Part shown: positions 22,521 through 44,053 of the stretch, in pieces
Position numbering within the stretch: the first letter of the stretch is position 1
Layout of the letters: the number at the start of each line of letters is the position of its first letter
IMG/VR virus record: IMGVR_UViG_3300005826_000294
Coordinates: 186,001 to 250,000 of that record
Direction: 5' to 3' (one strand)
Length of the DNA: 64,000 nt
The notes under the pieces: generated by a model
What the model saw: only the letters and a program-made list of their open reading frames with translations
The model's database searches: none
Told to the model about the DNA's origin: nothing
Position numbers and translations under genes: made by a program

Positions 22521-22751
22521 CTAGAAAGGATCGCCTGTATCAAAAAAGAATGGACTAACAGTCATACCGCCTATTGGTTCCTCTGGCTTTGTATCTCCAC
22601 GTAATCCAACAATATTTACAACGGAACTTACATCGCATTCCTCATTTTCTTCATCTTCGAGTTCAGATAGAATTTGATACACATCCATTGCTGAATGTAT
22701 AAATCCATGACTAATTAACTCATTAAAAAGATTGGAAATTATCTTTTTCAT
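22521..22751 (-). CDS. Hypothetical small protein
   Basis: ATGA overlap with upstream gene; degenerate hairpin tag. Confidence 0.55.
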   Translation of the reverse strand: MKKIISNLFNELISHGFIHSAMDVYQILSELEDEENEECDVSSVVNIVGLRGDTKPEEPIGGMTVSPFFFDTGDPF

Positions 22752-25700
22752 CCAACACCTCCAAATGGTGGAGTCATACTCATAATTGGATTAACATTTC
22801 TAGCAGTATCTAACCATGTTTCATATCTAGGAAAAATATCTTGGAATCCTCTTAATGGTTGATCAGTAGGAGTTGGAACAAAAGCATCTTGTTCTATAAT
22901 TTCAGGGTTTTTATATGGACAATTTTCTATTTCTTCAATTATTTTACGAATTTGTTTTGTATCTACTGGTGTTGGATCTTTTCCCATTTCACTAAACCAT
23001 TCAATTAAATTAACAAAAAAATCCTTAAAACCATATGCCTTTGCTTCTAAATAAGCATCTTTATTGCTCCATCCACCTTCTGTTCTAAAACGGGCTATAA
23101 CCCCTCCTGTTCTATCTGCTCCAAACCAACAATGAATATAAGTAGGTTTTTCTAATAATAATTCAGATATTCTATCTCCAAGTATCTTTCTTCCATAATC
23201 CTCTGATGATCCAGTTTCTATTGGAGCAGGAATATGATCCATGCCTATTTCTCCACACATTCTTCCAATTTCAGGATTATTATGTAAAGAAATAACACGC
23301 TCTACCCCCATATCTTTAAGGGTCTGTAATTGTTCTAAATTATCAATCATTCCACCACGGTATAATTTTTTAGGAACCACAATTCCAAAATTTCTTGGAA
23401 GTTTGTCAAATTTTCCTAATTTTGATAATGTTTTTCTATCTAATTTTCCGGTAGGTTTTAATCCATTAATAACCTGTAAGCAAGCAAGATTGAGAACTTC
23501 ATCCTCAGATATACATTTTGAATTTAACATTCCAATTAATTTAATAGCTTTTGTATCATTTATAGCTTTTTTATTAAACTTTATCGCATCTTTAATTTCT
23601 AAAATAACGGGATGAATTACAGGATCCATAAAAAGATCTATTCCTTTTTTTACTATATCATATTTTTTATTTAAAGCACAATATGTTGTAAATTCTAAAT
23701 CTGGTTCCGTCATTGATTCAGCAGGAAAATATTTATTTCTAATTTCATCTAATTTAAGACTAGCATCAATAGCCATATTTGGGAAAAGACCAGTCATATG
23801 TCTTTTAGTTTCTGCTTCTGTTTCAGATTCTCCTTTAAATCTATGACTAGGATTAATAATTTGTTCTGGATTTTTTTCTGGACCAATATGAACTCCCTCA
23901 TGAATTAAAGTTTCTACTAATGCTTTTTCTGTAGCTTGTTCTAATTGTTGAGCATTTGGTTGAGTAGATCCAAACATTCTCTTTACTTGTTCATTAATAC
24001 GATTTTTAAATATATGAACTTCTCTAGGATCTTTTCCAGGACCCATTTCTACATGCCCGAGTTGTCCAGGGCCTCCTTCAGGATGAACAATTATCTTTAT
24101 AATATTATTTTTTATATGAGGTGGAAGTTTAGCCAAAGCTTTTGCTACAGCAGTATCATATGGTTCTATAAGTATTTGAGCCCCTGGTGTTTTTACTTCT
24201 AAATCTTGAGCATCTTTGATAAAATACTTATTTATCCATTCAGCTCTTTCTTCAGGATCCATTTCTTCCATAATATCAATCTCATACAAAGTCATTTCAG
24301 ATCTTTTACGCTTTGGTTTGTTCTTTTTTTCTTTTTCTATTTGTTTTGCTAAATTGTCCCAATATTCTTCAAAGCCTTTCATCTCTTCATCATTGAAACC
24401 CTCAAATACTTCATCATGATCTTCATTAGCTCGTTTTGATAATTTAAAATTTGCTTGTTTTTTACCAAGATCAATCTCAGCAATTTTATCACCGCCAGCA
24501 AAAAATACTACATTTTTTGCCTTCCATTTTGGTAATTTTTCTAATGAAGGTAGTTCGACATTATAATCATCAATATAACCAATAGTTATATGAGGAACCC
24601 ATCCATGTTCCGATGGTAAATCAATAATATTACTAATAGCATCTTGAAGATCATTCTGTAAAGCATTTAATCCAACAGAATTAGGAATAAAAAATATTGG
24701 AACTCCATCATCTCCCTTAGAAAACATTCCTGTTCCCGCTATATACATAGATAATGGTTTATGATGAGAACATACTTTTTCAACAGATTTTATTATTGCT
24801 TTTCTTGTTATATTATCAATATCTTTTGCTTTTCCAAGATAAATAAGAGTTATATGTAATCCATCAGAACTTACACCTTCACCAATAAATTTATTTAACT
24901 TTTTAGGAACCATAATAGCAATCATAGCACCAGTATGTTTTTCTTTTGCTATTTTCAATAACTCTTCTTCATTATATCTATTTTTCCAAAATGAAAGTTT
25001 ATGCTCATCTTCTTCGTTTCCCCATAACAGAAGTTCTTCTTTAAGAGATGCTACTTTTCCAGATGATAAATATGTTTCTATTGTATTAGGAAGAATGTAT
25101 TGATTTTTTAGAGTACTTGGTTGGTGCCCTAGGTCTTTTGAAACATTTTCCAAAGCATTATTAAGTTCTTCCTTTAATTTTTTCTCCTTTTCTTTTTCTT
25201 CTTTTGGAAGAGTTCCTTTTCTTTGCTTTTTTAATTCTTTTTTTAACAAACTATTTGCCTCAGCACCACGAATATCTTTTGCAGTAATCTTAAATTTTTT
25301 CAAATACTTATTAACCATTTTTGGTGTAATTGTAAAAACTTTATCACCCTTTTTTTTATCTTTTATTAACTCTTTTAAAGCACTAACAGTTTCTTTATTA
25401 TTAACAATTTTTTCCTGATCTACACCAGATTTGCCGACATACTTAATTTTCGCTTTTCCACCAGAAAAAGTTATATGCTTAACTAACCAAGTTGTCACAC
25501 CATAATGTTTTCTTTCATCAGCAGAAAATTCATTACCAATTCTTTCTTTTGTATCATAAATTAAAGAAACAGCAATAGCAATCTGCTTGATTTCATCATC
25601 ATCAGATTTTAAATCTTCTTTAATCTTTTTAAGCAAATCAGAAACATTTTCTTCTAACTGTTTTATTTTCTTTTCTTTTTTCTTCCAACGCCTTTTTACC

Positions 25701-25801
25701 CACTTTTCATCATAAATATATGTAATGTTTCCACTTTCTTCTTCTCTTTTTTCAACATAATTTTTTGCTCGTTTTGAAAGATAAAACATATTAATCTCCA
25801 A
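22748..25801 (-). CDS. Multi-domain enzyme: topoisomerase IB core + 2H phosphoesterase + HExxH + PG-binding + Cys-dependent (Tyr/dual-specificity) phosphatase (likely start 25789)
   Basis: RIGN, YVGK, AKDIR, LGH, QY (TopIB catalytic set); HITL and HITI; LIHEGVH; GLKPTGKLDRKT; HCWFGADRTG. Confidence 0.85.
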   Translation of the reverse strand: MEINMFYLSKRAKNYVEKREEESGNITYIYDEKWVKRRWKKKEKKIKQLEENVSDLLKKIKEDLKSDDDEIKQIAIAVSLIYDTKERIGNEFSADERKHYGVTTWLVKHITFSGGKAKIKYVGKSGVDQEKIVNNKETVSALKELIKDKKKGDKVFTITPKMVNKYLKKFKITAKDIRGAEANSLLKKELKKQRKGTLPKEEKEKEKKLKEELNNALENVSKDLGHQPSTLKNQYILPNTIETYLSSGKVASLKEELLLWGNEEDEHKLSFWKNRYNEEELLKIAKEKHTGAMIAIMVPKKLNKFIGEGVSSDGLHITLIYLGKAKDIDNITRKAIIKSVEKVCSHHKPLSMYIAGTGMFSKGDDGVPIFFIPNSVGLNALQNDLQDAISNIIDLPSEHGWVPHITIGYIDDYNVELPSLEKLPKWKAKNVVFFAGGDKIAEIDLGKKQANFKLSKRANEDHDEVFEGFNDEEMKGFEEYWDNLAKQIEKEKKNKPKRKRSEMTLYEIDIMEEMDPEERAEWINKYFIKDAQDLEVKTPGAQILIEPYDTAVAKALAKLPPHIKNNIIKIIVHPEGGPGQLGHVEMGPGKDPREVHIFKNRINEQVKRMFGSTQPNAQQLEQATEKALVETLIHEGVHIGPEKNPEQIINPSHRFKGESETEAETKRHMTGLFPNMAIDASLKLDEIRNKYFPAESMTEPDLEFTTYCALNKKYDIVKKGIDLFMDPVIHPVILEIKDAIKFNKKAINDTKAIKLIGMLNSKCISEDEVLNLACLQVINGLKPTGKLDRKTLSKLGKFDKLPRNFGIVVPKKLYRGGMIDNLEQLQTLKDMGVERVISLHNNPEIGRMCGEIGMDHIPAPIETGSSEDYGRKILGDRISELLLEKPTYIHCWFGADRTGGVIARFRTEGGWSNKDAYLEAKAYGFKDFFVNLIEWFSEMGKDPTPVDTKQIRKIIEEIENCPYKNPEIIEQDAFVPTPTDQPLRGFQDIFPRYETWLDTARNVNPIMSMTPPFGGVG

Positions 25802-27649: not shown

Positions 27650-28277
27650 TGGGCAAACGATTATATTTTTTTGGAGTTGGTAATATAAATCCTGTTTTTA
27701 AAAGAGTTTCAAGTTCTTTCATTTTAGAATATTCAAAATCTGAACTATGAAGCATTCCAGAATTATATTTATTTCTTAACAGTTTAGCAATATTATAAGC
27801 TCTTAGTGCCGAAATTCCTGTTTTTAATTCCGATTCATTTACTTCAATTAACTTATCAATATCAATGTTCCTAAAAGAAAGAATATCTGGTAATAAAGCA
27901 TCCAAACGCTCTGATAAATTACTTTCTCCTTTTTTTTGAAGCAATGTTATAATTTTTCCCAATCTAATAGCATTTTCATCTTGGGAACAATTTCTAACTA
28001 CAGAAGAAATACAATTTGTGACTGCATCTGCTATATGAATTATTCCTTTACTACGAAGATCACTAGATACCTTATGCATCTCTGCAACAATATTTTCAAC
28101 GGCATGTTTAAAATATTGTATTCTTTTTTCTTCCTCATGGATTCTTTCCTTTGATGGTTTTTTTCCTCCAAACCATCTAAGAACTCTATGAGGCTTTGAT
28201 TTACTAATAAGAGCCCATTCAGTTTTTTTCGTATTTTTATTATATCTTTGAACCAACATAGAAAATTTTTCAAGCAT
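27603..28277 (-). CDS. Hypothetical protein with degenerate helical-hairpin tag
   Basis: MHKVSSDLRSKGIIHIADAV after FKHA. Confidence 0.6.
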   Translation of the reverse strand: MLEKFSMLVQRYNKNTKKTEWALISKSKPHRVLRWFGGKKPSKERIHEEEKRIQYFKHAVENIVAEMHKVSSDLRSKGIIHIADAVTNCISSVVRNCSQDENAIRLGKIITLLQKKGESNLSERLDALLPDILSFRNIDIDKLIEVNESELKTGISALRAYNIAKLLRNKYNSGMLHSSDFEYSKMKELETLLKTGFILPTPKKYNRLPIDANNWWDHFEKKND

Positions 28278-29463: not shown

Positions 29464-32400
29464 CTATTCCAGATCTTTTCTGCGTTCTTTATCTATTCTA
29501 GAAGCATCCATTTGTTTTTTATTTAAAATAATTGCTTTAATATTTTTTTTATTTTGAAAAACAGCCTTAGATAATCTATGATAACCATCAATTAATTTAC
29601 CTTTATATAATAATATTGGATAATTAAGAGAGACTTCTTTAATTCTTTTGAACTCTTCTTTATATTTCTTTGGATTATCTAATACAATTTTAGGAGTTAT
29701 ATTTTTACCCCAAGCATTATGATCCATATTCCATTCTAATGAATTAACAGACACATCTTCAGGTTTAATATTTTCAGTCAGTTCAATTAACATATCAACA
29801 GACCATTCTCCACTATCACTAGTATATGTTTGACCTGCTCTTTTAGATAATTTAAAATCAGCATTAGATTCTTTATATTCCATAATCATCCATTTATTTC
29901 CATCTGTTTTAAATAAATTATAAGTTCCTTTTTCTTTTTTACCATTTAATTTAAATACTATTTTGTTTTTAGTTGAACTTATCTCTTCATATGTGCCAGA
30001 ATCATGAATTTTTACATCACCTGATCCATAATTTCCTTTTTCTATTTTCCCTTCAAATTTATTATATGAAATAGGATGATTTTCAGTTTTCACAGCGAGC
30101 AATCTTTCTTTTCCATTTGGCAATTTATGTTTAGGAACAGCCCAAGAAGACATAGATCCTTCATCATTTTCCAAACGCAAATCATAATGATTTCCAGCCT
30201 TTAAAGCCTTATGATTTTGAATTACAAAACGATGTTTGTTTTTTTCTTCAAGTTTTCCTTCAGGTTCAGGTGTTTCATCAAAATTTCTTTTTTTCTTATA
30301 TTTTGATAGTGAATCAGCTCTTTTACTTAATTTAAAAGAAGACTTTTTCTTTAATTCTTCAAATCCTCTAACTAAATCTTCCATATATATTAACATTTCT
30401 TCTGGATCATCACCATAATTTTGAATATCCTCAAAGAACTCTCTAAGAAGTGCCTCGGACTCTGGATCTATATCTTTCTGATTCATAAGAGCACCGACCT
30501 TAGAAAAAATTTGATGATGCGTATCACTCTTATTTCTAATATTTCTAATATTAACAACAGGTTCTGGATTATATTTCCCAGGCATAATAAGAGCTTGAAC
30601 TAAAGCATATTCTCCAATTCCAAAAGAAGTATCATCATTATTAAGAGCAACATGATAAAAATCACTATACATAATCTCACCAGAAAGATTTTCATTAGGA
30701 TTTCTTTTAGCATATTCAACAAGTTTATTATTTAATGGAACAGGAGCAGTCCCATTTACCCAATTTGGATTGGTAATAAACTTCATATATCCAGGTGGTA
30801 TTTTCCAAAGACCAATAAATTTAAGAACTTTTGGTCTTATAGACGTATGAGATCTTAATGGTTGTTTTTTAGGATTACTTCTAGGAAGAGAAAAATCACT
30901 TCCACTTGGTGGTTTATAACTTCTATATGGATTATAAGAAGTAGATTCATGATGAGCTGGAACTAAATTACATTTAAAACCAAATGAAAGATCATCCTCA
31001 GAAATTTGATCTCCAATCTTAGTAATAAAGAAAGTTCCTGGACCATTTCCATAAATCCCATCTATTTTTTGATCAGATAAAATATCTTCCATATGATAAT
31101 ATTCAAACCAATCATCACGAGATTCCATCATCTTAGAAACCCAAGAATGAAGAGCTGGAATATAAACATTATCTACTTTATCTTTTGTTGTAATTTTTTC
31201 TGTAATATTCTTTTGTTCTATATTTCCATCTTTATCTGCTATAAAACCACTATTTATATTTATATCACCTAACCATGATATAAACATACCTGGATCTAAA
31301 TGAGATGTTTCTCCTAATGTCTCATACATAGAAAGAACACGTTGTTTTGATCCATTAATTTTTGATTTTTCTATTTTTTTAACAATTTCAGTAATTGGTT
31401 TCCCAAAATTTCTTTGAATATCAATTTGTTTAGAAAACCAATCATTATAGGAATTAATAGCAATTTTATGCTGATCATTAAATATTTTTGCCCCTAAGAC
31501 AGATAAATACATCATTGTTTTTTGTGTTAAGTTCTGTCTCATATTCGCTTCTTGATCAGCTTCAATTCCTCCTAATCCTTCTTCTTCTTCTACACCAAAT
31601 TCTTCTTTTCCTACTTGGTCCCACTTCATATGTTGCCAAGGTTCCCAAAAATATCCACCTTTTCTATTTAATCCTTTTCCTCTAGCACTTCTTAATGTAA
31701 ATTTTACATAATCATGCGGACAAATAAAAGGAACATCTAATAATTCATCAGGAGGAATTCGTTGAGGTAAAATGTTAGGTAAAGATTCATCTTCAGCACT
31801 CTGAGATGAACCTACAACAATACCAAATCTTTTTTGTAAAACTACTATTGCTTTCGCACCAGCTTCTGTTTTCCAAAATTCATGATTACGATCTAAAGCG
31901 GTCATTGGAACTCTATTTCCTGGGCATCCTGAATTCGGACACCAAGTGTGCCAATATGGAACTGGTTCAGACTGAACTTGTAAACTATATTGTTTTTTTT
32001 CTAAATTATTAAGATCAAGTTTTGAATGCCTAATATCAGTACTAAGAGATATAATAGATTGTTCATATTTTCTCTTTTTATCTTCAAGTTCTGGAGTTTG
32101 ATTTTCTCCTAATTGTTCTATAACTTCATTTAATTTTTCTTGTAATTTAAAAACATCATTCTGTTTTCTAGACACATAATTTTCAAGTTTGGTAATTTTA
32201 TCTTTATTTTCTTCATATACTCTTTTACAATCTTCACAATACCAACGTTTTACAGGACCTTTTTCTTTAGAAGGGACCATAGCATTATAAAAAACATCCT
32301 TACTTTGTCTTTTTTGTTTTCTTGATTTACAATAAGCACAAACAGGAATTCTTACTTCTTTATATCCCTTATCTTGTGCTATAATTTTAGATATTCTTCG

Positions 32401-35400
32401 TGATAATGATTTATATATATATCCACCAAGTGGAACACTCCCGCGAGGAGGATCAACTCTATATCCAAATGAAAAATAAGTATTTGCGAGGTCTGTGATT
32501 GCTTCATTAATTAAAGAGATATATGCTTTTGAACTTGGAAGATCTGTTATAGGAATACCTTTTATCAATAAATCAATATCTCCTTGATCAAACATGCCGA
32601 AAGGCATACTACCGACATCTCCTTTTCTACCAAGTTTTAATTGAGAACTATTATTATCAAACCATTTCTTTCCAACACCCATAATAATTGCTGGAAGAAC
32701 CCATTTTTGTGCTATTTCAGGATTTTTTTTTAATTCTTCCCAAGCATACGGATCTTGGAAAAGTTTTGTTAAAGAAGGTCCATCTTTCATATTATCTGGA
32801 GAAAATAAATCTTTGGCATTAGCAGACATAACTGGACGCTTAATTTCCTCAGAATTAAACCATCTACTTAATACTACTCCATCTTTATCTCTAGGAGGTT
32901 CTAACTTTTCTCCAAAAATGGGAATTTTTTCTTTTGTATCTTCTTCTTCGTCTTCTTCCTCTTCTTTATATTCAGAAAGAGCTTCTCCCCATAAATCTTC
33001 CTTTTCTTCATCTCCAAGGAGATCAGAAAAATCAACATCTTTTTTTTCTTCAACTTCTTCAATTTCTTCTGGTTTTACAACTTGTTTAAATCCAAAATAT
33101 TCAGGTCTCTTTTTTTTTAAAACTTCTTCCTGTTTTTTTTCAACTTCTTCCTGTTTTTTTTCAACTTCTTCCTGTTTTTTTTCAGGAACACTTTCTATAA
33201 ATTTATCAAGTTTTTCCTGCTCAGTTTCAATCTCTTCTGGTTCTTCCTCTTGAAACTCAGGATTTTGTTCTAAAAATTTCTTAACTTCTTCATCATCCTG
33301 ACTCTCAGCTATTTTCCATAATTGTTCAAGATTAATTGGACTTTTTTTTACAGATGTTTTTAATAAATTGTTTGAAATTATATGTATTAAATTTTCTGTT
33401 TGATCTTTAATAGATGTAAATATATTTCCAGATTTTTCTACTGGCAATCCTGTCCAAATTCCATTTGCCCTTTTAACTTTACCCACAACGTCTGGATTTC
33501 CTGTAATTTTTAATCCAGAAATTATATTTGATTCTGCACCTAATAAAACAGCATTATTAATCATACCTATTGGTTTGTTTTGTTTAACAAAACTTTTTAA
33601 TAAATCTTTGACTTCTTTGTTTTTAGAAAAATTACAAACATCTTCCCCGCCACATACAATAAGGGCATCATATTGTTTAGTATTAATATCTTTTATTTTT
33701 TTCGAATTTATTAATGTTCCTTCAACACCCTCAACAACATTAAAAGTAGATATAATATGTGATTTAAACCCATATTTATTTATAAATATATTTTGTGTAA
33801 TTAAGTATTCTTTTTCAGAACACCCTGTTGGAGGAACCAAAATTGCTATTTGAGCAAATTTAGCATTAAGCATTTCGATAAATTCTGGATCAGGTTCATC
33901 AAAACCCATCCATCTTCTTTTCTCCATATGCTTTTCTAATTGACGTTCTTTTTCATTTGACTTCCAGGCATCGGCTTTCCATTCGGAAGATGGCCAATCA
34001 ATTTGTTCAAACTGAAAATTTTTTATTTCATTTTCTTGAAGTATATTATTAAATCCTTTTTTTACAACATTAGGCAAATCTTGTAGATTTTTTTCACCAT
34101 AAAATTGTATATCTGCTGGTTCATCACCTTTATATATAAATATTCTTCCCCGCCATCCTTCATTAGTTATTTGTTTTATATTATTATGTTGTGCTAATTC
34201 AATATGACCAAAATATTGTTTCTCACGCTTTCCATTGTTTATATTAAGATGATATGTAAATTTATTATTAATTTCATCCCATAACCATATATATTCTTTA
34301 TTTATTTTAGACGCTTTTAAATAAGCTTTCTTTGAAATAAAATCATCTGCCGCATTATATGCTCCTTGCTGACTATATGGTTCTTGACCTTGAGATGGAG
34401 CAACTTGTATAATATTTCCCTCTGGAAATGGAATATCTCCATAATCATATTTATTTTCATGTAAAGGTGCATTATTATAATTGTTTTCTGCTGTGTCTTG
34501 TTCTCCACCTAAAATTTTTTTAATGTTCCCATTGTTTTCTCCAAATGACTCAGGAACACGAATACTACCTTTATTATGTAGAGTGCTCACATCAGATCTC
34601 ATTCCACTTCCTTTAACAACACCAGTAGTCACATCTTCCCATTTTTCATTTAAATTTGTTAAAAGATCTTTTAATTCTTCACGCAATTTATCTATGGATA
34701 TTTCACTCTTCAATTTAAACTCTACATGAATACCAGATCCTCCACTTTGAAAAATTGTAGGAGTAGTCCCATATTTCTCTTTTAATTTTGAAGATAATTC
34801 TCTAGCATATTTTTTAGCTTTTTCTAATGGATAATTACCATGAATATCTAAATCCACGAAACCAAGATCTGTTTTGTTTCCAAATACCTGGTGAAAAGAC
34901 AAAAGACGCCGTTTAACCCAATAAAAATAATTATTAGGGTTTTCATCATTATTAGGATTATCATTAGTTATTACTATTTCTTTATCATTATGATTTCTTT
35001 TTAATATGGTTTTATTTTTCCCAACTCCAAGATAAATTAATACAGGCTTCCCTTTAATACGAGACATTATTTTCTTTCTTACTTCTGGTTTTTCATAATG
35101 TTTCCTAATTTCTCCACGAGTTAGTTTTTTGTCTTTATCAATTAAAACTTCCGACATTTTTTCTTTATCATCATCGGCAGAACTTATATTAATTGGTTCA
35201 AATTCAATAATGACAAATCTTTTATCTGGACCAAAACGATCTTCTAAAGATTTAGCCATTCTTTCACCATATGCTTTATTTATTCTTGTGATACTCATAA
35301 CTCTTTTAGTAATTATCTTAATATCAGCAATATTAGCTCCAGAATAACTTTTACATTTAACTTTATCATCAGGATTTACATTAACATCTCCTGGCCTAAT

Positions 35401-38019
35401 CGTATATGTTCTTTTTCCACTTTTAATATCTTCAGCATATTGATCAGGAAAATATATTGTTCCATTTTCAGTATATTGAGCACATTTTACAAGAATATTC
35501 CTTAATTTAGCTTCGGAAGCAAGATTTTTATATTTATTTATAATTGTATTTGTAATTGCTTTAACAACCTCTTCTTCTGTAAAATCTTTTTCATATCTAG
35601 TTTTAAAATCTTCAATAATTTCATTCAAATGTTCTTTATACCATTCGAATTCTTTTAACATTTGAGGTAAATATTTAGCATTAAATCCTTTTAATGGATC
35701 TGCTTGGGTTGGTTCTTCTTCTGGAAAACTTTCAGCATTAATTAAAAACGCATATCGCTTATCCTGAAATCCTGCTAATCCACCTTCAATGATATTTGTA
35801 GGCAATCCAGTCATTTTTTGAATAACTCCATTTGCCCTTTGTAAATAATGAACATGTGCTGGACCAAAAGGTTTTCTACTACTCAAAAATCTTCTAACTC
35901 TATATGGACCACTACCATTAGCAATAGCCATAAGTTGATACATATTATAGGCACCAGGAACATTTGGATTGTATTCATATTTAATAACATCACTAACAAG
36001 CATTCTCATTTTGTTCATAAAATCTGATTTTGAAACCCAATCAGACAAGTTCTTTAAAGAACTATTATTTCTAACACTTTTACTAGAAAAAGATCTATAA
36101 AATTTAGCTGATGTATCTGGATGTTCCATAGAAGTTATTAGTTGAGCTAAAGCACTTTTAGCTACACTTGGTGTAATATAGGTATCAGCAACATTTTGAA
36201 GTCTTAATAAATTATTAGGAGTCGGTTTAAACCCATATTTATTCTCAAGTAAATCAATATCAAATTCTTTTCCAATATATCTATTACCAATTTTTTTTAC
36301 AATCCCAGGGACATTACCTCTTGGGTTCATTTTAATTGAAGTGCCCTCTCTTCTTTTTACAACTTTATTGGGATTTTGTTTTATAAACTCTTCCACAGAA
36401 TTTTTATCGACAGGGACATTTTTCCATATATTTTCTTTGCGTATATTACGCATATTTTTCTTCCACTCATTTGAAAGTTCCTCTAACTTTTTAGGATCTA
36501 TGCCAGTTGCCTGTTCAAGTTTTGGATTTTTAGAAAGCCATTTCATAAAATATGGACCATGAACTTGAGTCAAACCAAATGAATTTCCTGAATCTCCACG
36601 AATCCAACTTTTATTATTACTTTCAAGTTTAGACATAATTTTAAATCCAAGTTCTGGATCAAAATTTAAACTTGCAGGCACCTTTGGTTCTCTAACATGA
36701 ATTGGATTAACTTTTACTTGTGATTTTAATTCTATAAGCAATTTATCAGGAGTTAAAGCTTCCGCTCTTTTTGAAAGTTTAAAAGAATTCATAGCTTTAA
36801 CCACCTTAAAATTATCAATATTTTTAGAATGAAATTCATTCATCGTAGCATCTTGGGGTTTTTTATCATCACGAAATCTTACAAACTTTTGATGCCTTAA
36901 TCCTCCAGGAACTCTTTCCTGAAATCCAATTTCAATTACAAATTTTCCTTTTTTTAATTTATCTTTTATAATTTTCTCATTTTCTTCAGAAAAATTTCCT
37001 ATATCACTAATATGATATAATTTTCCTTCATAATATTGTCCAAATAATGCTTTTAAATTACCTTTATCTGTAGTTTCACAATCATAAACTACATAATCAT
37101 CACTATCAGATTTACCAACTCCACCCTTATATTTAAACATAATTCCAGATGGTTTTGGTTCATTTTCACCCTTTTCTTTATATTCATATGGTTGATCTTT
37201 TAATTTTAATACAATTCCTTCTCCACCAGATTTAACAGCATTATTCATTACATTTTCCCATTTAGAAAATGGATATTGTTTTGTTATTAATATAGTATCA
37301 GTAGGTTTTATAATATTTTGTAATATTTTTCTTCTTTCTGAAAAAGGTTTTTTAGTTATATTATTACCTTTATACCATAAAATATCATAAAGATGTAATT
37401 TAATTTTTCCAGGTAATTCTTTCATTTTTTCTATTGCTTTATCAGAATTACTACCAGCAATTGATGTAACTTTTCCAATATCTTGTTTATTATTATTCCA
37501 ATAAACTAATTCACCTTCTACTAATGTTCCATCTGGAAGAGATTTAAGACCCCCTATTAATTCTGGAAAATTATCTGTTTTTTCATCACCACGGCGACTA
37601 TATAATTTAACTTCTCCATTTGATTTTATAGCTTGAGCTTTCCATCCATCAAGTTTATCTTCTATAATTATATTGTCTTTATTATAATCTTTTAATAATT
37701 CATCTGGATCATTAATTTGCGATAAACGCATAAGTGCCTTTGGAGATACTGAATCTGATGCTTCATTTATAGAGATATTTTCTAATTCTTTAAGACGATT
37801 TTCCATTTTTTCTATTTTTTCAGTTATAAGTGATGAAAGAACTTCATTGCCTTCAGCTTTTTCCAATCTCTCTTTTGTTTTAGGCAATTCATTTTTTAAT
37901 AAATCTTTCTCACATTTTTCGCACATTCCATGCGTTTTAGTATCTTCACTGAAATCGTCTCTTTCTTCTGAAAATTGAAATTCCTTGCACCATGAACAAT
38001 AATGATCTATTTTTACCAT
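29464..38019 (-). CDS. 2851-aa polyprotein-like multi-enzyme: Zn finger, ATP-dependent DNA ligase, lytic transglycosylase-like, ASCH, LigD-type primase-polymerase, DJ-1/PfpI, sigma70-region-2-like + Zn ribbons, LigD 3'-phosphoesterase, ParB/Srx-like
   Basis: EDKLDG, EGELV, EGIVLK, RHQKFVRFRDDK; LES...GDSGNSFGLTQ; IKSGKRTYTIR; VDLD and SGGSGIH; YDALIVCGG; Y.KKRNF..TPEP, FVIQ.H.A...HYDLRLE, SWAVPK, G.YGSG; IDGYHRL. Confidence 0.85.
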   Translation of the reverse strand: MVKIDHYCSWCKEFQFSEERDDFSEDTKTHGMCEKCEKDLLKNELPKTKERLEKAEGNEVLSSLITEKIEKMENRLKELENISINEASDSVSPKALMRLSQINDPDELLKDYNKDNIIIEDKLDGWKAQAIKSNGEVKLYSRRGDEKTDNFPELIGGLKSLPDGTLVEGELVYWNNNKQDIGKVTSIAGSNSDKAIEKMKELPGKIKLHLYDILWYKGNNITKKPFSERRKILQNIIKPTDTILITKQYPFSKWENVMNNAVKSGGEGIVLKLKDQPYEYKEKGENEPKPSGIMFKYKGGVGKSDSDDYVVYDCETTDKGNLKALFGQYYEGKLYHISDIGNFSEENEKIIKDKLKKGKFVIEIGFQERVPGGLRHQKFVRFRDDKKPQDATMNEFHSKNIDNFKVVKAMNSFKLSKRAEALTPDKLLIELKSQVKVNPIHVREPKVPASLNFDPELGFKIMSKLESNNKSWIRGDSGNSFGLTQVHGPYFMKWLSKNPKLEQATGIDPKKLEELSNEWKKNMRNIRKENIWKNVPVDKNSVEEFIKQNPNKVVKRREGTSIKMNPRGNVPGIVKKIGNRYIGKEFDIDLLENKYGFKPTPNNLLRLQNVADTYITPSVAKSALAQLITSMEHPDTSAKFYRSFSSKSVRNNSSLKNLSDWVSKSDFMNKMRMLVSDVIKYEYNPNVPGAYNMYQLMAIANGSGPYRVRRFLSSRKPFGPAHVHYLQRANGVIQKMTGLPTNIIEGGLAGFQDKRYAFLINAESFPEEEPTQADPLKGFNAKYLPQMLKEFEWYKEHLNEIIEDFKTRYEKDFTEEEVVKAITNTIINKYKNLASEAKLRNILVKCAQYTENGTIYFPDQYAEDIKSGKRTYTIRPGDVNVNPDDKVKCKSYSGANIADIKIITKRVMSITRINKAYGERMAKSLEDRFGPDKRFVIIEFEPINISSADDDKEKMSEVLIDKDKKLTRGEIRKHYEKPEVRKKIMSRIKGKPVLIYLGVGKNKTILKRNHNDKEIVITNDNPNNDENPNNYFYWVKRRLLSFHQVFGNKTDLGFVDLDIHGNYPLEKAKKYARELSSKLKEKYGTTPTIFQSGGSGIHVEFKLKSEISIDKLREELKDLLTNLNEKWEDVTTGVVKGSGMRSDVSTLHNKGSIRVPESFGENNGNIKKILGGEQDTAENNYNNAPLHENKYDYGDIPFPEGNIIQVAPSQGQEPYSQQGAYNAADDFISKKAYLKASKINKEYIWLWDEINNKFTYHLNINNGKREKQYFGHIELAQHNNIKQITNEGWRGRIFIYKGDEPADIQFYGEKNLQDLPNVVKKGFNNILQENEIKNFQFEQIDWPSSEWKADAWKSNEKERQLEKHMEKRRWMGFDEPDPEFIEMLNAKFAQIAILVPPTGCSEKEYLITQNIFINKYGFKSHIISTFNVVEGVEGTLINSKKIKDINTKQYDALIVCGGEDVCNFSKNKEVKDLLKSFVKQNKPIGMINNAVLLGAESNIISGLKITGNPDVVGKVKRANGIWTGLPVEKSGNIFTSIKDQTENLIHIISNNLLKTSVKKSPINLEQLWKIAESQDDEEVKKFLEQNPEFQEEEPEEIETEQEKLDKFIESVPEKKQEEVEKKQEEVEKKQEEVLKKKRPEYFGFKQVVKPEEIEEVEEKKDVDFSDLLGDEEKEDLWGEALSEYKEEEEDEEEDTKEKIPIFGEKLEPPRDKDGVVLSRWFNSEEIKRPVMSANAKDLFSPDNMKDGPSLTKLFQDPYAWEELKKNPEIAQKWVLPAIIMGVGKKWFDNNSSQLKLGRKGDVGSMPFGMFDQGDIDLLIKGIPITDLPSSKAYISLINEAITDLANTYFSFGYRVDPPRGSVPLGGYIYKSLSRRISKIIAQDKGYKEVRIPVCAYCKSRKQKRQSKDVFYNAMVPSKEKGPVKRWYCEDCKRVYEENKDKITKLENYVSRKQNDVFKLQEKLNEVIEQLGENQTPELEDKKRKYEQSIISLSTDIRHSKLDLNNLEKKQYSLQVQSEPVPYWHTWCPNSGCPGNRVPMTALDRNHEFWKTEAGAKAIVVLQKRFGIVVGSSQSAEDESLPNILPQRIPPDELLDVPFICPHDYVKFTLRSARGKGLNRKGGYFWEPWQHMKWDQVGKEEFGVEEEEGLGGIEADQEANMRQNLTQKTMMYLSVLGAKIFNDQHKIAINSYNDWFSKQIDIQRNFGKPITEIVKKIEKSKINGSKQRVLSMYETLGETSHLDPGMFISWLGDININSGFIADKDGNIEQKNITEKITTKDKVDNVYIPALHSWVSKMMESRDDWFEYYHMEDILSDQKIDGIYGNGPGTFFITKIGDQISEDDLSFGFKCNLVPAHHESTSYNPYRSYKPPSGSDFSLPRSNPKKQPLRSHTSIRPKVLKFIGLWKIPPGYMKFITNPNWVNGTAPVPLNNKLVEYAKRNPNENLSGEIMYSDFYHVALNNDDTSFGIGEYALVQALIMPGKYNPEPVVNIRNIRNKSDTHHQIFSKVGALMNQKDIDPESEALLREFFEDIQNYGDDPEEMLIYMEDLVRGFEELKKKSSFKLSKRADSLSKYKKKRNFDETPEPEGKLEEKNKHRFVIQNHKALKAGNHYDLRLENDEGSMSSWAVPKHKLPNGKERLLAVKTENHPISYNKFEGKIEKGNYGSGDVKIHDSGTYEEISSTKNKIVFKLNGKKEKGTYNLFKTDGNKWMIMEYKESNADFKLSKRAGQTYTSDSGEWSVDMLIELTENIKPEDVSVNSLEWNMDHNAWGKNITPKIVLDNPKKYKEEFKRIKEVSLNYPILLYKGKLIDGYHRLSKAVFQNKKNIKAIILNKKQMDASRIDKERRKDLE

Positions 38020-39833: not shown

Positions 39834-42800
39834 TTATACTCCTGCTCCAGGTCCAAGAGGTGGTGGAGTCATTCCGCCACCTTCAGCACCACCACCGCCT
39901 ACCATTTCACCAGGTGGTGGTGCTAGTTCAGGAAGACCACCAGGAGCCACTCCACCCATTCCTCCCGTTCCTCCCATTCCTAAATCTCCACCAGCTTCAG
40001 GAGGTGTCATTTGACTCCTTTCTTTACTATCAATTGGTTCCATAATAGGCTTCTCAGGATCAAGAGATCTTAATTCTGTTAAACTCATTCCAGATAAAGA
40101 GTTTTCTTCTCTCATTTTTATTGCCTTATCAATTGCTTCTCTTCTCATTTTTATTTTTTCATCTTCATAAGATATTCCCAAACTCTTATAAAGAGATTGA
40201 ACAGAAGCCTGCCCAGCACTAACCATTCCTGTTATATTACTAATATAATCCTGTAAATCATATAAATTCATTTGGTTCCATTCAATTTCTGGAACAATTA
40301 AATGTTTTTCTTTATTCCTGTATTCATAGAAACCTTGAATTTCACTAATGGGAGCAAATATCTTATTTATAAGCCATCTAGCAATCATATTACGAAAATT
40401 AAAATATCTTTGTCTTAAAACTTCTAATCCAATTGATGCTGAAGAGTATACAGCACTTTCAGTATCTATAACTGCAGGGGGAACCATTAATCCTGTATAA
40501 ATATTTTTAGTAATAAATTCAAGATCACTAGCAATATCTAATACTTGACCAGAAAATCCTACCCTCTCTACAGTTACACCAGCATGAGTTATAATTTTAG
40601 CATCTTTATCATATTGCGCTTCTTCAAACATTTGTCTATAAAACTCTAAATCTTCTTGAGTTGCCCTATATTCTCCTTCAGTATTTCCACCAACTTTAAT
40701 TAGTGTAACAGGATTAATCATACCATCTGCTTGAGCAAATTTGCTATTTCCCTGGATAGTCATTAATCCATTATTTCTAGTGATAAAAAGACCATTTGAA
40801 ACTTCAAAACAAAATACCCTTCCATTATAAGGAATTTTTTCAATTGAAGCTCCATTGTAATTATTATTTCCATAAATTACTGGTTCTTTTCCATAATTTG
40901 AATCAGACCAAGTAATTAAATAAAATTCTTTACCATATCCATTTTTATCTACTATTAAATGAGGAGCATATCCACACTTAAATACTATCTCTTGAATATC
41001 ATCAGCAAGCCTCTTTGAAATAGTATTATAACGATATGCTGTTGATCCATTTTTATATTTACTTTCAATCTCAGAACCATCCCCTTTAACCAAAGCATTT
41101 AATAATATTTTTAACAATCTTGGAGACAATTGCTTCGTCCAAAAAGGAACATGTTTATTTCCAGAACCATATCCTATTTCATTCATAAAATGTTCAGCAA
41201 TTATTTTTCTAGAAATAGACCAAGTTGTAATATCATTGTTAGATGAATATCCTTGTTTATTTGCCGAAACATATTCTCCACAATGTAAATTAAGCATATC
41301 TGCTATTTTTATTATAGATTTTTTAATATACTTATAATCCTTAGAGTTGTTATTTTGGCATATACTAATTTTATAATTTTGAGTTTTATTATTATAATGA
41401 ATACAACCTTCAGAAATCATATATCCAAGAAATTCTAAATAGTCTTCTATAGGAATTTTTTGATCAAATAAATTAATATTAGATATTTCTTTTCCCACAT
41501 ATTTATCAATAGAGGCTTTTGATTTATAAAAACATCCTTTTTTAACATCCTCAGCTCTTACAAACTGAAAATCATTATATCCATTATAATGTGTCTTTTT
41601 CTTCGCTAACCACATTCTATGATTTGGAGTAACCATAATATCTATTTTTTTTCCATAGAAATGATATAATTCTCCATTAAATTCATAATCCGTACGATTA
41701 ATATATTTTTGAAACTCTAATTCTCCAGTTTCTTGATTCATTGTTGCTATTTCATCGTTTTTAGAAATATCATCATAAAACTTAAAACCATCTTTTGTCA
41801 ATACCTCAGTAGATACCGGGAAACATTCTCTTAACTTATCATAAAGCATTAGGTCTTTAAAAACGCTAACAATAATACTTGTTCCTCTTACATCATATGG
41901 ACTTGATAATATTTTTAAATGGGAAATGTTAAAATTATCTAATGGAATATCTTGTCCTGCTCTAATATGATATAAAATTTTCTCTGGGATTTGTTTTCTA
42001 AGTTGAGAATCAGCAGGATTATTGCTAAACACTAATCGTTGAAGAACAGCATCAGGTTTTAATGTAATAATAGGATCACCAGAGAGAACCGTCTTTTTAA
42101 CATGAACATAATCAGGATTTTGTATTACAATTTTTGACCATTTTCCTGTATTTTCATTAAGTTCGGCAAATGGAAAACAATTATGTACTGCCACTCCATT
42201 TGCCACATATGAATGATCATCTTCAACTTCAATATCATACATAAAGTTTTCATTAAATTTATTAGTTATATCTTCAACTTTCTTTATACTTAACATTTGC
42301 CAATTTTTATAAAGACTAGAATTAGGAGAACACCATTTTGTCTCTCTTAATAAATCATTCTTATTAGTTTTTAAATATGTTTTAAATTTATATGATTCAT
42401 TCGCAACTATCTTAATTCTATATTTATCAGATATATTATCTTTAGCATTAATTTTTGAACAAGTTGGATGAATACCTAATCTTCTTAACATAAGTGTAAA
42501 CTGATTAGCAAGATTTTTGGAAGAAGTAGAAATAATAATATGACCATTGCTTTGATCAATACAACCATCACCATCTATAAAACCAGCTAATAAATGTTTT
42601 TGTAATTCAATAGGCAAAGACATTATTGTCTCGCTTAATTGTTTTTCTTTACTATATTCTCCACAATGCTCCATAAAAAACTCTGCTATTTTATGACCAT
42701 TGCGTTTTTTACTTCTTAATAAATGATCACATTTATTAGAGTTTCTACTCACATATGTTGTTCCAGAAAATCCAAAACATTTTTTTAATAAAGGAGAAAG

Positions 42801-44042
42801 ATTATCATCTATAAATTTTTTATCATAACTTGTAAATTTTATTCCATCATAATCTTTTTTAGATTTACAATAACACCCCTCAGCAAGCCAAAATCCCATA
42901 ATATAACATAATTCTGAATTAAAATTATCTTCTTCATCAGAATTAAATGGAGAATATACTATATCATTAATTTTAATATTATTTGTTTCAATAAATTCTG
43001 GACTAATATCTCTATTATGTATTTTTCTACAATTACTACATTGTTTTCTTCTTGGAAGAATTCTAATTTTTTTATTATTACATGAAGGAGTATCACATTT
43101 AATATTATCTAAACTAGTATGTAAAATTGGATGTTTTCCACTTATAATTAATGATTCAGGAAGACCAACAACAGAAATTTTATAAACTTTTAAATGTTCT
43201 TCTTTAACAACATTTGTAGGTTTGATAAATTTATTAATTACTTTCTTTTTATTTCCTAAATGGGTTAGAACAATATCACCTATTTCTATTTCAGCTATAG
43301 GCTTTACAGATCCATCCGCCATAGTAATTAAAGAAGATCCTTTTATTTTTTCACCTAACTTCCAATATTCTAAAGAAATATCCGAAAGAGCACTGACTAA
43401 GTCCATTTCTTCAATCATAGTTTCAAAAAAATCTAAAACTCTCTTATCTTGACATTTTAAATTCAATTTACTAATTGGATATGTTGAATGAAGAGTAATG
43501 GCATTTCTAACTATAGGATGAAGTTGAAAAAAGTTTCTGCACCAAGCATTAATTGTTAATTTATCTCTAGGCAAATTAAGATTTGCCATAGTAAATAAAG
43601 GACTATATACTTCTGGAGCCAAACGTTCATATGAAGACCCTGCTGAGGTCCCAACACCAACAGAACCAACTCCCGAAGATCCTAATGTGGATTGTTTAAT
43701 TAAAGTACTTGCTTTTAAAACTTCTTTTTCTATATGAGAGGCACTATGAACAATAGCACCAACAGCATTAGAGGTTTCTCGTGAAGAATAACTCCTACCA
43801 TCGGATCCTGGAAGCCAAGCACTCCTTTTTAATCCTTCATCATCCAAAGAAGCATTATGAATATTTTGAGGCATCTTGTTTAATCTACTACTTTCATAAC
43901 TTAACCCTTCCTTAATTAAACCTCTCTCAATATCACTTTCAATACTTGCTTTACGATATTCGGTCAGTCCAGATGCTCTCTTTGGATTTATTCTTAATTG
44001 CTCTTCTGAAGTTTTTGGTCTAGAACCTCTTTTAACTATCAT
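39834..44042 (-). CDS. Portal protein with two inteins (652 aa after splicing)
   Basis: Directly downstream of terminase; exteins HPIVRNAITLH, EYWKLGE|CFPFAEL, IQNPDYV, RGTSII..VFKDL, LRE|SKFAQADG..NP. Confidence 0.8.
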   Translation of the reverse strand: MIVKRGSRPKTSEEQLRINPKRASGLTEYRKASIESDIERGLIKEGLSYESSRLNKMPQNIHNASLDDEGLKRSAWLPGSDGRSYSSRETSNAVGAIVHSASHIEKEVLKASTLIKQSTLGSSGVGSVGVGTSAGSSYERLAPEVYSPLFTMANLNLPRDKLTINAWCRNFFQLHPIVRNAITLHSTYPISKLNLKCQDKRVLDFFETMIEEMDLVSALSDISLEYWKLGEKIKGSSLITMADGSVKPIAEIEIGDIVLTHLGNKKKVINKFIKPTNVVKEEHLKVYKISVVGLPESLIISGKHPILHTSLDNIKCDTPSCNNKKIRILPRRKQCSNCRKIHNRDISPEFIETNNIKINDIVYSPFNSDEEDNFNSELCYIMGFWLAEGCYCKSKKDYDGIKFTSYDKKFIDDNLSPLLKKCFGFSGTTYVSRNSNKCDHLLRSKKRNGHKIAEFFMEHCGEYSKEKQLSETIMSLPIELQKHLLAGFIDGDGCIDQSNGHIIISTSSKNLANQFTLMLRRLGIHPTCSKINAKDNISDKYRIKIVANESYKFKTYLKTNKNDLLRETKWCSPNSSLYKNWQMLSIKKVEDITNKFNENFMYDIEVEDDHSYVANGVAVHNCFPFAELNENTGKWSKIVIQNPDYVHVKKTVLSGDPIITLKPDAVLQRLVFSNNPADSQLRKQIPEKILYHIRAGQDIPLDNFNISHLKILSSPYDVRGTSIIVSVFKDLMLYDKLRECFPVSTEVLTKDGFKFYDDISKNDEIATMNQETGELEFQKYINRTDYEFNGELYHFYGKKIDIMVTPNHRMWLAKKKTHYNGYNDFQFVRAEDVKKGCFYKSKASIDKYVGKEISNINLFDQKIPIEDYLEFLGYMISEGCIHYNNKTQNYKISICQNNNSKDYKYIKKSIIKIADMLNLHCGEYVSANKQGYSSNNDITTWSISRKIIAEHFMNEIGYGSGNKHVPFWTKQLSPRLLKILLNALVKGDGSEIESKYKNGSTAYRYNTISKRLADDIQEIVFKCGYAPHLIVDKNGYGKEFYLITWSDSNYGKEPVIYGNNNYNGASIEKIPYNGRVFCFEVSNGLFITRNNGLMTIQGNSKFAQADGMINPVTLIKVGGNTEGEYRATQEDLEFYRQMFEEAQYDKDAKIITHAGVTVERVGFSGQVLDIASDLEFITKNIYTGLMVPPAVIDTESAVYSSASIGLEVLRQRYFNFRNMIARWLINKIFAPISEIQGFYEYRNKEKHLIVPEIEWNQMNLYDLQDYISNITGMVSAGQASVQSLYKSLGISYEDEKIKMRREAIDKAIKMREENSLSGMSLTELRSLDPEKPIMEPIDSKERSQMTPPEAGGDLGMGGTGGMGGVAPGGLPELAPPPGEMVGGGGAEGGGMTPPPLGPGAGV
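40746..41825 (-). mobile_element. Intein 2 of portal (360 aa) with LAGLIDADG
   Basis: CFPVSTEVLTKDG ... TPNH ... LGYMISEG ... LVKGDG ... VFCFEV ... QGN|S. Confidence 0.9.
42180..43349 (-). mobile_element. Intein 1 of portal (390 aa) with LAGLIDADG; first residue Lys
   Basis: KIKGSSLITMADG ... SGKH ... GFWLAEG ... AGFIDGDG ... MYDIEV.DDHSYVANGVAVHN|C. Confidence 0.85.
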
Positions 44043-44053
44043 ACTATACTCCT

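Follow-up and report, generated by a model that had tools for sequence, protein, structure and literature searches.

A 2851-residue protein encoded just after the portal gene of an uncultured 312-kb phage carries an ATP-dependent DNA ligase, a LigD-type primase-polymerase (AEP) and a LigD-type 3'-phosphoesterase (PE) among several other domains, and a conserved heptapeptide motif, F-x-[L/I]-S-K-R-A, at its domain borders suggests that it is cut into separate enzymes, probably as capsid cargo, although cleavage and packaging are inferred from sequence and context alone. The analyzed window is a 64-kb stretch (about positions 186,002-250,001) of JGI contig Ga0074477_1264118 (312,596 bp), on which the ORF is called as one gene with an ATG start. 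The preliminary description of three LigD-type end-joining activities dispersed among unrelated domains of a single ORF was confirmed, as all three domains lie where it had placed them.

Domain content of the 2851-residue protein

The features of the ORF and of the surrounding head-morphogenesis block are compiled in the table.

Features of the ORF and its neighborhood (window coordinates; residues refer to the 2851-aa protein)
Position	Strand	Residues	Feature	Basis
29464..38019	-		Whole 2851-aa polyvalent ORF	ORF call; 35 full-length homologues
37735..38019	-	1-95	N-terminal CxxC...CxxC zinc ribbon plus coiled-coil linker	Sequence; present in a subset of relatives
36781..37734	-	96-413	ATP-dependent DNA ligase (nucleotidyltransferase + OB domains)	Pfam PF01068; PDB alignments; NCBIfam
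36763..36783	-	413-419	FKLSKRA, motif site 1, ligase/B border	Motif; split point in a relative
35470..36780	-	414-850	Region B, possible SLT-like lytic transglycosylase (lead only)	Invariant columns; atlas search
35155..35469	-	851-955	ASCH domain (YqfB-like)	Pfam; Foldseek
34450..35139	-	961-1190	AEP primase-polymerase of the NHEJ (LigD-Pol / Prim-PolC) type	Invariant motifs; AlphaFold model and Foldseek
34324..34344	-	1226-1232	DFISKKA, degenerate motif site at the end of a disordered linker between AEP and X1	pLDDT <50 at model residues 322-384; relatives have F-A-LSKR here
33865..34323	-	1233-1385	X1, confidently modeled alpha/beta domain of unknown function	No match among the 50 Foldseek hits listed
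33385..33864	-	1386-1545	DJ-1/PfpI domain lacking the catalytic Cys-His	Pfam 5.5e-18; alignment
32920..33339	-	1561-1700	Acidic low-complexity linker rich in E and K	Sequence
30334..32919	-	1701-2562	Region E, conserved core with invariant Cys pairs (Zn ribbons) and a long coiled-coil hairpin	Alignment; AF2 model
30316..30336	-	2562-2568	FKLSKRA, E/PE border	Motif
29854..30333	-	2563-2722	LigD-type 3'-phosphoesterase	Pfam PF13298; NCBIfam; PDB alignments
29836..29856	-	2722-2728	FKLSKRA, PE/ParB-like border	Motif
29467..29853	-	2723-2851	ParB/Srx-like module (invariant DGxHR), at different positions in relatives	phrog_17560 3.9e-11; alignment
28270-29133			Gene with an endonuclease VII/HNH-like hit	phrog_1035 2.4e-29
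22748..25801	-		Neighboring polyvalent protein, TopoIB + 2H phosphoesterase + PTP-like phosphatase	Same motif at its N-terminus (MFYLSKRA) and internally (nt 24448)
16202..20263	-		1353-aa protein; conserved N-terminal ~260 aa is the candidate prohead protease	phrog_18299; atlas search; conserved block
39834..45904	-		Portal (with two inteins) and large terminase, immediately upstream, anchoring the head module	Gene neighborhood

The ligase domain matched Pfam DNA_ligase_A_M above the gathering score (2.6e-31), and motifs I-VI are present, including KLDG (aa 122-125), EGELV, LYDIL, EGIVLK, FKYK and motif VI, LRHQKFVRFRDDK. It does not, however, group with the LigD/NHEJ ligases as judged from scores rather than from a phylogeny: the best PDB matches are archaeal/Lig1-type ligases (2hiv, 1.2e-20; 2cfm aligned through motif VI) compared with 2.7e-5 for Mtb LigD (1vs0), and TIGR02779 scored 77 bits against a cut-off of 227.75.

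The PE domain was recognized by Pfam LigD_N (3e-27) and aligned at residue level to 3p43 (1.4e-31) and to Pae LigD PE (2lj6, 1.1e-25; 2lj6/3n9b), with the KRNFDETPEP leader and the metal and phosphate ligands of the QxH, HxDxR and ExHxxxY motifs in register; TIGR02777 scored 138.5 bits, just under its cut-off of 144.

For the AEP domain, Pfam LigD_Prim-Pol (PF21686) reached only 19-24 bits against a cut-off of 27.4, and a profile search against PDB sequences returned only PriS at E=0.11, so that structure prediction was needed. The AlphaFold model (pLDDT 80.7) matched Mtb LigD PolDom (2r9l) at E=4.2e-10, and also 6sa0 (Prim-PolC; 7e-9, rmsd 3.4 A), 2fao (1.3e-8) and 5dmu (1e-7), and all of the top 16 PDB matches were NHEJ-type polymerases (LigD PolDom, Prim-PolC and an archaeal NHEJ polymerase). 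In line with this assignment, GFVDLDIHG (aa 1053-1061), SGGSGIH (aa 1092-1098) and RSD (aa 1141-1143), which comprise the catalytic DxD (1056/1058), H1060 and D1143, are invariant in 30 relatives.

The ASCH domain, of a family of PUA-like beta-barrels, just passed the Pfam threshold (PF04266; 21.3 bits against 21.2), with 25 of 27 relatives giving a hit, and Foldseek matched it to YqfB (9kyf, E=5e-6, TMt 0.74). The DJ-1/PfpI domain has MINNAV at the nucleophile elbow where most relatives have MICHGP or MICHAP; we thus rejected it as the self-processing protease of this protein, also because many relatives lack the domain. Region B shows invariant residues (E466-S, GLTQ, AYN) reminiscent of the catalytic Glu-Ser, GLxQ and AYNxG motifs that SLT lytic transglycosylases carry in a lysozyme-like fold, and the atlas search gave SLT/Destabilase look-alikes at 0.90-0.92; Pfam on 27 members, a PDB profile search and hhalign against the T7 gp16 N-terminus were all negative, such that this reading, which would have supported an ejection role, is kept only as a lead. 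For the ParB-like module, a PDB profile search gave only a weak SbnI hit (E=0.6).

Region E, although well modeled (AF2 pLDDT 79.6, pTM 0.79), had no Foldseek hit at E<=0.001 in PDB or BFVD, and its profile search against PDB sequences yielded only coiled-coil noise. Atlas scores of 0.5-0.63 with stray Pol-beta/NTase names were rejected as below any useful level and unsupported by Foldseek. Only 87 relatives were found among 1.84 billion representatives. Proteins of ~640 aa related to the first part of region E lie next to trigger-factor-like, sigma-70-like and PD-(D/E)XK genes, a context that did not clarify what region E does.

Relatives, gene neighborhood and the F-x-[L/I]-S-K-R-A motif

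About 35 full-length relatives exist, all in metagenomes on contigs of up to 468 kb, and they share the order LIG-B-ASCH-AEP-(X1)-(DJ1)-E-PE-(ParB). Megablast of the gene against 50,697 phage records gave no match, and tblastn found only ligase-domain hits to SPbeta-like ligases, with no cultured relative. The gene always sits two to three genes after the portal, inside the head-morphogenesis block, and the arrangement TerL-portal-small ORF-(~500 aa)-megaprotein-DUF6897...protease-like ~1300-aa protein recurs in four loci. The order AEP | E | PE-2H is kept even where these are separate genes, and distant relatives show the architectures DJ1-E-PE-2H and E-PE. No Ku or Gam was detected among the ORFs scanned in the window, which covers 64 of 312 kb, or in four related loci, consistent with the preliminary description, which had seen no Ku in the window; this does not establish absence of Ku from the genome.

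The heptapeptide motif has not come up in the preliminary description. The window contains 7 LSKR[A/T/H] sites against 0.03 expected, all within 22.4-36.8 kb, and the family has 73 [LI]SKRA sites against 0.23 in shuffles, of which 49 are at module starts or N-termini and 18 in linkers. The motif is shared with the N-termini of neighboring head-module enzymes and is kept across 33-60% identity. Codons differ between copies, which rules out a DNA-level repeat and indicates that selection acts on the peptide. The motif also marks points where relatives split the protein into separate genes: in one related locus (L003) the ligase is a separate gene starting MTFNLSKRA, the split falls exactly at motif site 1, and the remainder starts MKINNISFKLSKRA. 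A distant megaprotein (P0035) has about 10 such sites, and a NUDIX gene nearby starts MYISKRA. In another lineage (L006), by contrast, the split genes lack the motif.

A candidate prohead protease lies in the same block. Its assignment rests on one PHROG hit (phrog_18299 'head maturation protease', 1.9e-13) and weak atlas leads (S78/S77/S80 look-alikes at 0.86-0.88), whereas Pfam and PDB profile searches were negative.

Proposed processing, packaging and joint action of the repair domains

We favor, with moderate confidence, the view that the ORF encodes a polyvalent polyprotein of the head-morphogenesis module that is most likely cut at the F-x-[L/I]-S-K-R-A sites by the phage's prohead protease, for which a motif-bearing stretch such as KKSSFKLSKRAD would be a substrate. 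The expected pieces are Zn-ribbon plus DNA ligase, region B plus ASCH plus LigD-type polymerase, X1 plus inactive DJ-1 plus region E, the LigD-type 3'-phosphoesterase, and the ParB-like module. These would be carried in the capsid together with neighboring enzymes bearing the same tag (the TopoIB/2H/PTP protein and others) and would enter the cell with the DNA. There, the phosphoesterase would clean 3'-phosphate or 3'-ribonucleotide ends, the AEP polymerase would fill or extend them (LigD-type polymerases prefer rNTPs) and the ligase would seal them, amounting to a LigD-like, Ku-independent healing and sealing pathway acting on nicks, gaps, cohesive ends or breaks made by host nucleases in the incoming genome. 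Our analysis establishes what the domains are, that their catalytic motifs are present (apart from DJ-1), that the gene position is conserved, and that the motif is non-random and matches fusion/fission points; cleavage, packaging, ejection, the substrate and the cooperation of the three enzymes without Ku are inferred, and early action and escape from restriction or CRISPR cuts are conjecture.

The preliminary interpretation, a virion-delivered double-strand-break repair kit that could circularize the injected genome or reseal cuts from restriction/CRISPR nucleases, is partly supported. The three enzyme types of LigD are present with intact catalytic motifs, and the polymerase and phosphoesterase are specifically LigD-like, but virion delivery is supported by context alone, namely the gene position and the peptide tag shared with neighboring enzymes. 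As no Ku was found in the window, canonical NHEJ is not shown, and a Ku-independent gap or nick repair role, as for Prim-PolC, fits equally well. If the fragments are indeed capsid cargo, this phage would bring its own DNA end-repair chemistry (clean, fill, seal) into the cell and could close or mend its genome before any gene is expressed, independently of host ligase or NHEJ, which would be a direct answer to nucleases that cut incoming DNA. The motif further offers a compact, testable candidate peptide code for polyprotein processing in huge phages, region E is a large conserved region without known fold that is tied to end-processing enzymes, and the new, naturally separable LigD-like modules could be useful as enzymes. 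At a considerably more speculative level, and unlikely on present evidence, region E, which is always kept between the LigD-type polymerase and the phosphoesterase even when these are separate genes, might be a new DNA-end-binding or bridging factor replacing Ku in a self-sufficient end-joining machine packaged by a clade of uncultured huge phages; the motif would then be a previously undescribed processing and targeting code of the prohead protease, making fused and split gene forms equivalent and explaining how these polyproteins are shuffled during evolution.

It cannot be ruled out that the protein acts without ejection, as a late intracellular DNA-maturation polyprotein that repairs nicks, gaps and damaged ends in replicated concatemers so that they can be packaged, and that it is made with the head and packaging genes because it is needed at that time. 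This possible, though less favored, alternative would be in line with the location of the gene between terminase/portal and the gene with the endonuclease VII/HNH-like hit, with the structural match to the Ku-independent gap-filling enzyme Prim-PolC being as good as that to LigD PolDom, and with the lack of a detected Ku in the window; in T4, endonuclease VII and ligase are needed to make DNA packageable. However, it does not explain why a short shared tag marks just these enzymes and their borders or why the tag is confined to the head block, the phage has a separate recombinase and a DnaG primase elsewhere in the window, and the precedent for post-portal polyvalent proteins is injection (PMC5512222).

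More doubtful is a loose accretion of independent counter-defense and repair domains in which the LigD-like trio is coincidental and the motif only a packaging tag or a linker signature inherited through gene fusions. The modules do shuffle, as ParB moves, the ligase is sometimes a separate gene or absent, and DJ-1 (catalytically dead here) and X1 are optional, and described polyvalent proteins combine unrelated activities (PMC5512222). Yet ASCH-AEP, E and PE are kept in nearly all relatives in the same order, even when split into genes, a ligase gene is fused or close by in every locus examined where the 5' side is present, and the motif is conserved with differing codons. An RNA (for example tRNA) repair kit healing RNAs cut by host anticodon nucleases or other RNases is unlikely, since the ligase has the DNA-ligase OB domain with motif VI and matches DNA ligases at 1e-20, the polymerase is an NHEJ-type DNA repair AEP, and TopoIB and ParB-like modules act on DNA, even though ASCH relatives act on RNA or nucleosides (YqfB and ZmASCH being the top ASCH matches), neighboring or fused partners include 2H phosphoesterase, a PTP-like phosphatase and PolyA_pol/CCA-type nucleotidyltransferase, and weak PF09414 RNA_ligase hits occur on some relatives' ligases.

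Comparison with known systems

Bacterial LigD, which acts in NHEJ with Ku, usually encoded by an adjacent gene, combines the same three enzyme types on one polypeptide. Here, they are spread over 2851 aa with at least six other modules between them, scores fall far below the NCBIfam LigD cut-offs, and the protein is encoded in a phage head module and probably cut into separate proteins.

With the phage-type polyvalent proteins surveyed by Iyer, Burroughs, Anand, de Souza and Aravind in 2017 (PMC5512222), our protein shares its giant multi-enzyme architecture in the late/virion gene block next to the portal and a ParB-like module, with 2H in the neighbor; members of that class lie next to portal/MuF and were proposed to be processed into units and injected with the DNA. 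That survey reports no DNA ligase, LigD PE, DJ-1 or ASCH domains and found Primpol only in conjugative-element proteins, and neither it nor a systematic survey of jumbo phages describes the present architecture. Of the signature domains of that class (MuF, Zn-metallopeptidase, DdrB-type ParB and others), we found no MuF and no Zn-metallopeptidase domain, although both are common in described polyvalent proteins, and the ParB-like module, with its invariant DGxHR, has only a weak PDB hit. Processing seems to be directed by a short repeated peptide motif rather than by an in-built peptidase.

The tag resembles the capsid-targeting and cleavage peptides of T4, where internal proteins and Alt carry a short N-terminal peptide that targets them to the prohead core and is removed by gp21 before they are ejected (PMC7411985); giant-phage ejection proteins (SPN3US) are a related case. 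As there, several head-module proteins share a short N-terminal peptide whose consensus also occurs as an internal site, with a (here candidate) prohead protease gene in the same block. The motif described here is basic (LSKRA), whereas T4-type sites are L/I-x-E, and it punctuates multi-enzyme polyproteins.

Mycobacteriophages Omega and Corndog encode Ku and borrow the host's LigD to join their cos ends (Pitcher et al. 2006, as cited in PMC12848934), likewise end-joining chemistry on phage genome ends, whereas the present phage encodes the LigD-like enzymes and no Ku was seen in the window. The mycobacterial Prim-PolC/LigC gap-repair pair, which works without Ku, is matched by the AEP model about as well as LigD PolDom; there is no evidence here for a base-excision context, and the PE domain is a LigD feature.

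Domain composition of the 2851-codon frame

The minus-strand ORF is an uninterrupted frame of 2851 codons in a region of 29% G+C, and it is called as a single gene on JGI metagenome contig Ga0074477_1264118 (312,596 bp). The preliminary description had placed the three activities combined in LigD, an ATP-dependent ligase, a primase/polymerase and a 3'-phosphoesterase, in this one protein; this observation held, with coordinates and motifs all correct.

Features of the 2851-codon ORF, its neighbors and related loci (window positions unless a locus is named)
Feature	Position (strand)	Residues	Profile match
2851-codon ORF	29464-38019 (-)		
DNA_ligase_A_M		101-286	Pfam, 2.6e-31
Region B		414-850	
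Decayed motif copy, ILVKCAQ	35476-35496 (-)	842-848	
LigD_Prim-Pol		1049-1132	Pfam, sub-threshold, 19.3 bits against 27.4
ASCH			Pfam, sub-threshold
X1		1233-1385	
DJ-1_PfpI		1390-1538	Pfam, 5.5e-18
DJ-1/PfpI nucleophile elbow	33547-33564 (-)	1486-1491	
Acidic linker	32920-33339 (-)	1561-1700	
Region E		1701-2562	
LigD_N (3'-phosphoesterase)		2601-2704	Pfam, 3e-27
TopoIB/2H/PTP-like polyvalent protein	22748-25801 (-)		TopoIB, 4.4e-29
Endonuclease VII/HNH-like protein with Srd-like C-terminus	28270-29133 (-)		2.4e-29 (endonuclease VII/HNH-like), 6e-12 (Srd)
Candidate protease protein	16202-20263 (-)		PHROG 'head maturation protease', 1.9e-13
Portal gene	39834-44042 (-)		
RecA/UvsX	62225-63325 (-)		
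Homing-endonuclease-type genes (examples)	659-1591, 12815-13966, 25791-27233, 59396-60679		
Proteins sharing the first part of region E	L007 4872-6878; L008 2073-3995; L009 1152-3065		

For the phosphoesterase (PE), the best PDB sequence matches are stand-alone archaeal PE proteins and the P. aeruginosa LigD PE (1.4e-31 to 1.1e-25), and the alignments carry the KR(N)F..TPEP leader as well as Q-x-H, H-x-D-x-R and E-x-H-x-x-x-Y, which are the metal and phosphate ligands of the Pseudomonas enzyme. One leader residue is Asn where Pseudomonas has Asp15. In the ligase, motifs I, III, IIIa, IV, V and VI are present, and the alignment to archaeal ligases runs through the OB domain. However, archaeal/Lig1 ligases match far better (1e-20) than the Mtb LigD ligase (2.7e-5), and no NCBIfam ligase model reaches its cut-off. 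The domain is therefore a minimal ATP-dependent DNA ligase, but not demonstrably one of the LigD clade.

For the AEP polymerase, thirty relatives share invariant GFxDxDxH, SGGxGxH and RxDxxT(L/F)H motifs, and all 30 hit PF21686 individually, with a best E-value of 1e-7, whereas a sequence profile found nothing useful in PDB. An AlphaFold model of residues 851-1385 (pLDDT 80.7) settled the question: the 16 best Foldseek matches are the Mtb and Pae LigD polymerase domains, M. smegmatis Prim-PolC and the Methanocella NHEJ polymerase (E from 4e-10 to 1e-7, TM about 0.5-0.6), with CAPP, S-2L PrimPol, human PrimPol and PriS well behind. The same model shows that the ASCH domain is nearest to E. coli YqfB.

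Region B has invariant E-S, GLTQ and AYN residues reminiscent of SLT transglycosylases, and there is an atlas lead in the same direction, but Pfam, a PDB profile search and hhalign against T7 gp16 were all negative, such that this assignment remains unproven. X1 is a confidently modelled domain with no match among the 50 Foldseek hits listed. The DJ-1/PfpI domain has lost its Cys-His in this genome, the nucleophile elbow reading MINNAV as opposed to MICHGP/MICHAP in most relatives, and is probably catalytically dead here. It is separated from region E by an acidic linker with 44 Glu in 140 residues and short tandem EKKQEEV repeats. Region E is the most conserved unknown, with invariant Cys pairs, a long helical hairpin and a good model (pLDDT 79.6, pTM 0.79). 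No structural relative was found in PDB or BFVD, and only 87 relatives exist among 1.84 billion representative proteins. About 35 proteins of roughly 600-690 aa share the first part of region E; in loci such as L007, L008 and L009 they sit in a conserved context beside a trigger-factor-like gene, a sigma-70-like gene and often a PD-(D/E)XK/Cas4-like nuclease. The C-terminus of the ORF product is ParB/Srx-like, with invariant DGxHR.

Relatives and genomic context

Thirty-five full-length relatives (33-64% identity) come only from metagenomes, on contigs up to 468 kb. No deposited phage has the protein, and the terminase is at most 25% identical to that of any deposited phage. NCBI labels two of the relatives (P0021 and P0036, on contigs of 243 kb and 246 kb) as 'MAG: Patescibacteria group bacterium'; these are either mis-binned phage contigs or a hint about the host. 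The module order LIG-B-ASCH-AEP-(X1)-(DJ1)-E-PE-(ParB) is conserved, although ParB moves about and the ligase is sometimes absent from the polypeptide.

In four loci the gene lies just after terminase and portal and before a DUF6897 gene and a protein of about 1300 aa. The N-terminus of the latter hits a 'head maturation protease' PHROG and has atlas look-alikes in the prohead protease families S78, S77 and S80, which Pfam and PDB do not confirm. In the window this protein has 1353 aa, and its N-terminal ~260 aa are highly conserved across three loci, the conserved block including KDH, VSMGTAVG, a CxxC...C insertion and IELSLVVxGAD; it may be a protease fused to a long scaffold-like tail. The portal gene (1402 aa) appears to hold two inteins, one with a LAGLIDADG homing endonuclease (aa ~240-620) and a second Hint module (aa ~736-857), whereas the portal of the relative L002 has only 673 aa.

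A second polyvalent protein in the window (1017 aa; 1013 aa from the ATG) combines a eukaryotic/poxvirus-type topoisomerase IB with a 2H/LigT phosphoesterase and a PTP-like phosphatase. In P0035, a distant relative, TopoIB, 2H, AEP, PolyA_pol and PE are fused into one post-portal protein. Directly downstream of the large ORF lies a gene for a 287-aa protein that combines endonuclease VII/HNH-like hits with a C-terminal part resembling T4 Srd, an anti-sigma factor or 'decoy of sigma70'. The density of homing-endonuclease-type genes across the window is unusually high, comprising HNH, HNH_repeat, DUF4379 treble-clef and three LAGLIDADG_2. Among the ORFs scanned, the window also encodes a UvsX/RecA recombinase, a DnaG/Toprim primase, an APS kinase, a DnaJ-like protein, a PolyA_pol-type nucleotidyltransferase and sigma-70 region-4-like proteins.

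Proposed role of the encoded enzymes

We propose a processed, capsid-carried set of enzymes whose core (PE, LigD-type polymerase and ligase) would heal and seal DNA ends, nicks or gaps on the incoming genome. The domain assignments, the locus arrangement and the motif statistics described below rest on the analysis itself, whereas processing, carriage in the capsid, ejection, the substrate and cooperation of the three enzymes without Ku are inferred. In the LigD pathway, the polymerase adds ribonucleotides, the PE trims them and removes 3'-phosphates, and the ligase seals; by analogy, this would suit a moment when only host rNTPs and ATP are available. No Ku or Gam was found in the window or in the related loci. 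Canonical NHEJ is therefore not shown, and Ku-independent repair of the Prim-PolC kind fits equally well. The preliminary interpretation, a virion-delivered double-strand-break repair kit, is supported only in part. Since the window also encodes the recombinase and DnaG primase, the AEP is unlikely to be the replicative primase. Competing readings are an intracellular DNA-maturation role coupled to packaging, a functionally unlinked assortment of domains, and an RNA-repair kit.

In its predicted enzymology the protein works like LigD, but it differs from LigD in ligase clade, architecture and the lack of a detected Ku partner. It fits the concept of phage polyvalent proteins. However, the defining survey lists no DNA ligase, LigD PE, DJ-1 or ASCH, and it found Primpol only in conjugative elements (PMC5512222). 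The jumbo-phage survey does not mention end-joining at all (PMC7824862), and literature searches for LigD together with huge or jumbo phages found nothing relevant. We therefore regard the protein as belonging with this established concept but departing from its described examples in domain content, and as adding two unexplained novelties, namely the motif code and region E.

A recurrent peptide motif at domain borders

FKLSKRA occurs three times in the protein, exactly at the ligase/B, E/PE and PE/ParB borders, and a degenerate copy (DFISKKA) lies at the end of the disordered AEP/X1 linker. Further copies lie in the 1017-aa neighbor, internally at about aa 451 and right after its start codon as MFYLSKRA, and near the N-termini of two small neighboring ORFs. 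The statistics are clear: the window has seven sites against 0.03 expected, all within 22.4-36.8 kb, and the 36 family proteins have 73 [LI]SKRA sites against 0.23 in shuffles, 49 of them at module starts or N-termini. The consensus is KK[AS]S-F-x-[LI]-S-K-R-A-x-[YF]. The codons differ between copies, so the peptide is what is selected.

The simplest reading is a protease site, a capsid-targeting tag, or both. The motif would then work like the short N-terminal peptides of the T4 internal proteins and Alt, which target cargo to the prohead and are removed by gp21 (PMC7411985).

The motif coincides with gene fission points. In the related locus L003, the ligase is its own gene starting MTFNLSKRA, and the downstream protein starts MKINNISFKLSKRA. 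P0035 has about ten sites, and a nearby NUDIX gene starts MYISKRA. In the lineage L006, AEP, E and PE-2H are separate genes in the same order, and that lineage lacks the motif. In the present genome, a decayed copy (ILVKCAQ) lies where most relatives have LSKRA just before the ASCH domain, and this border site seems to have been lost.
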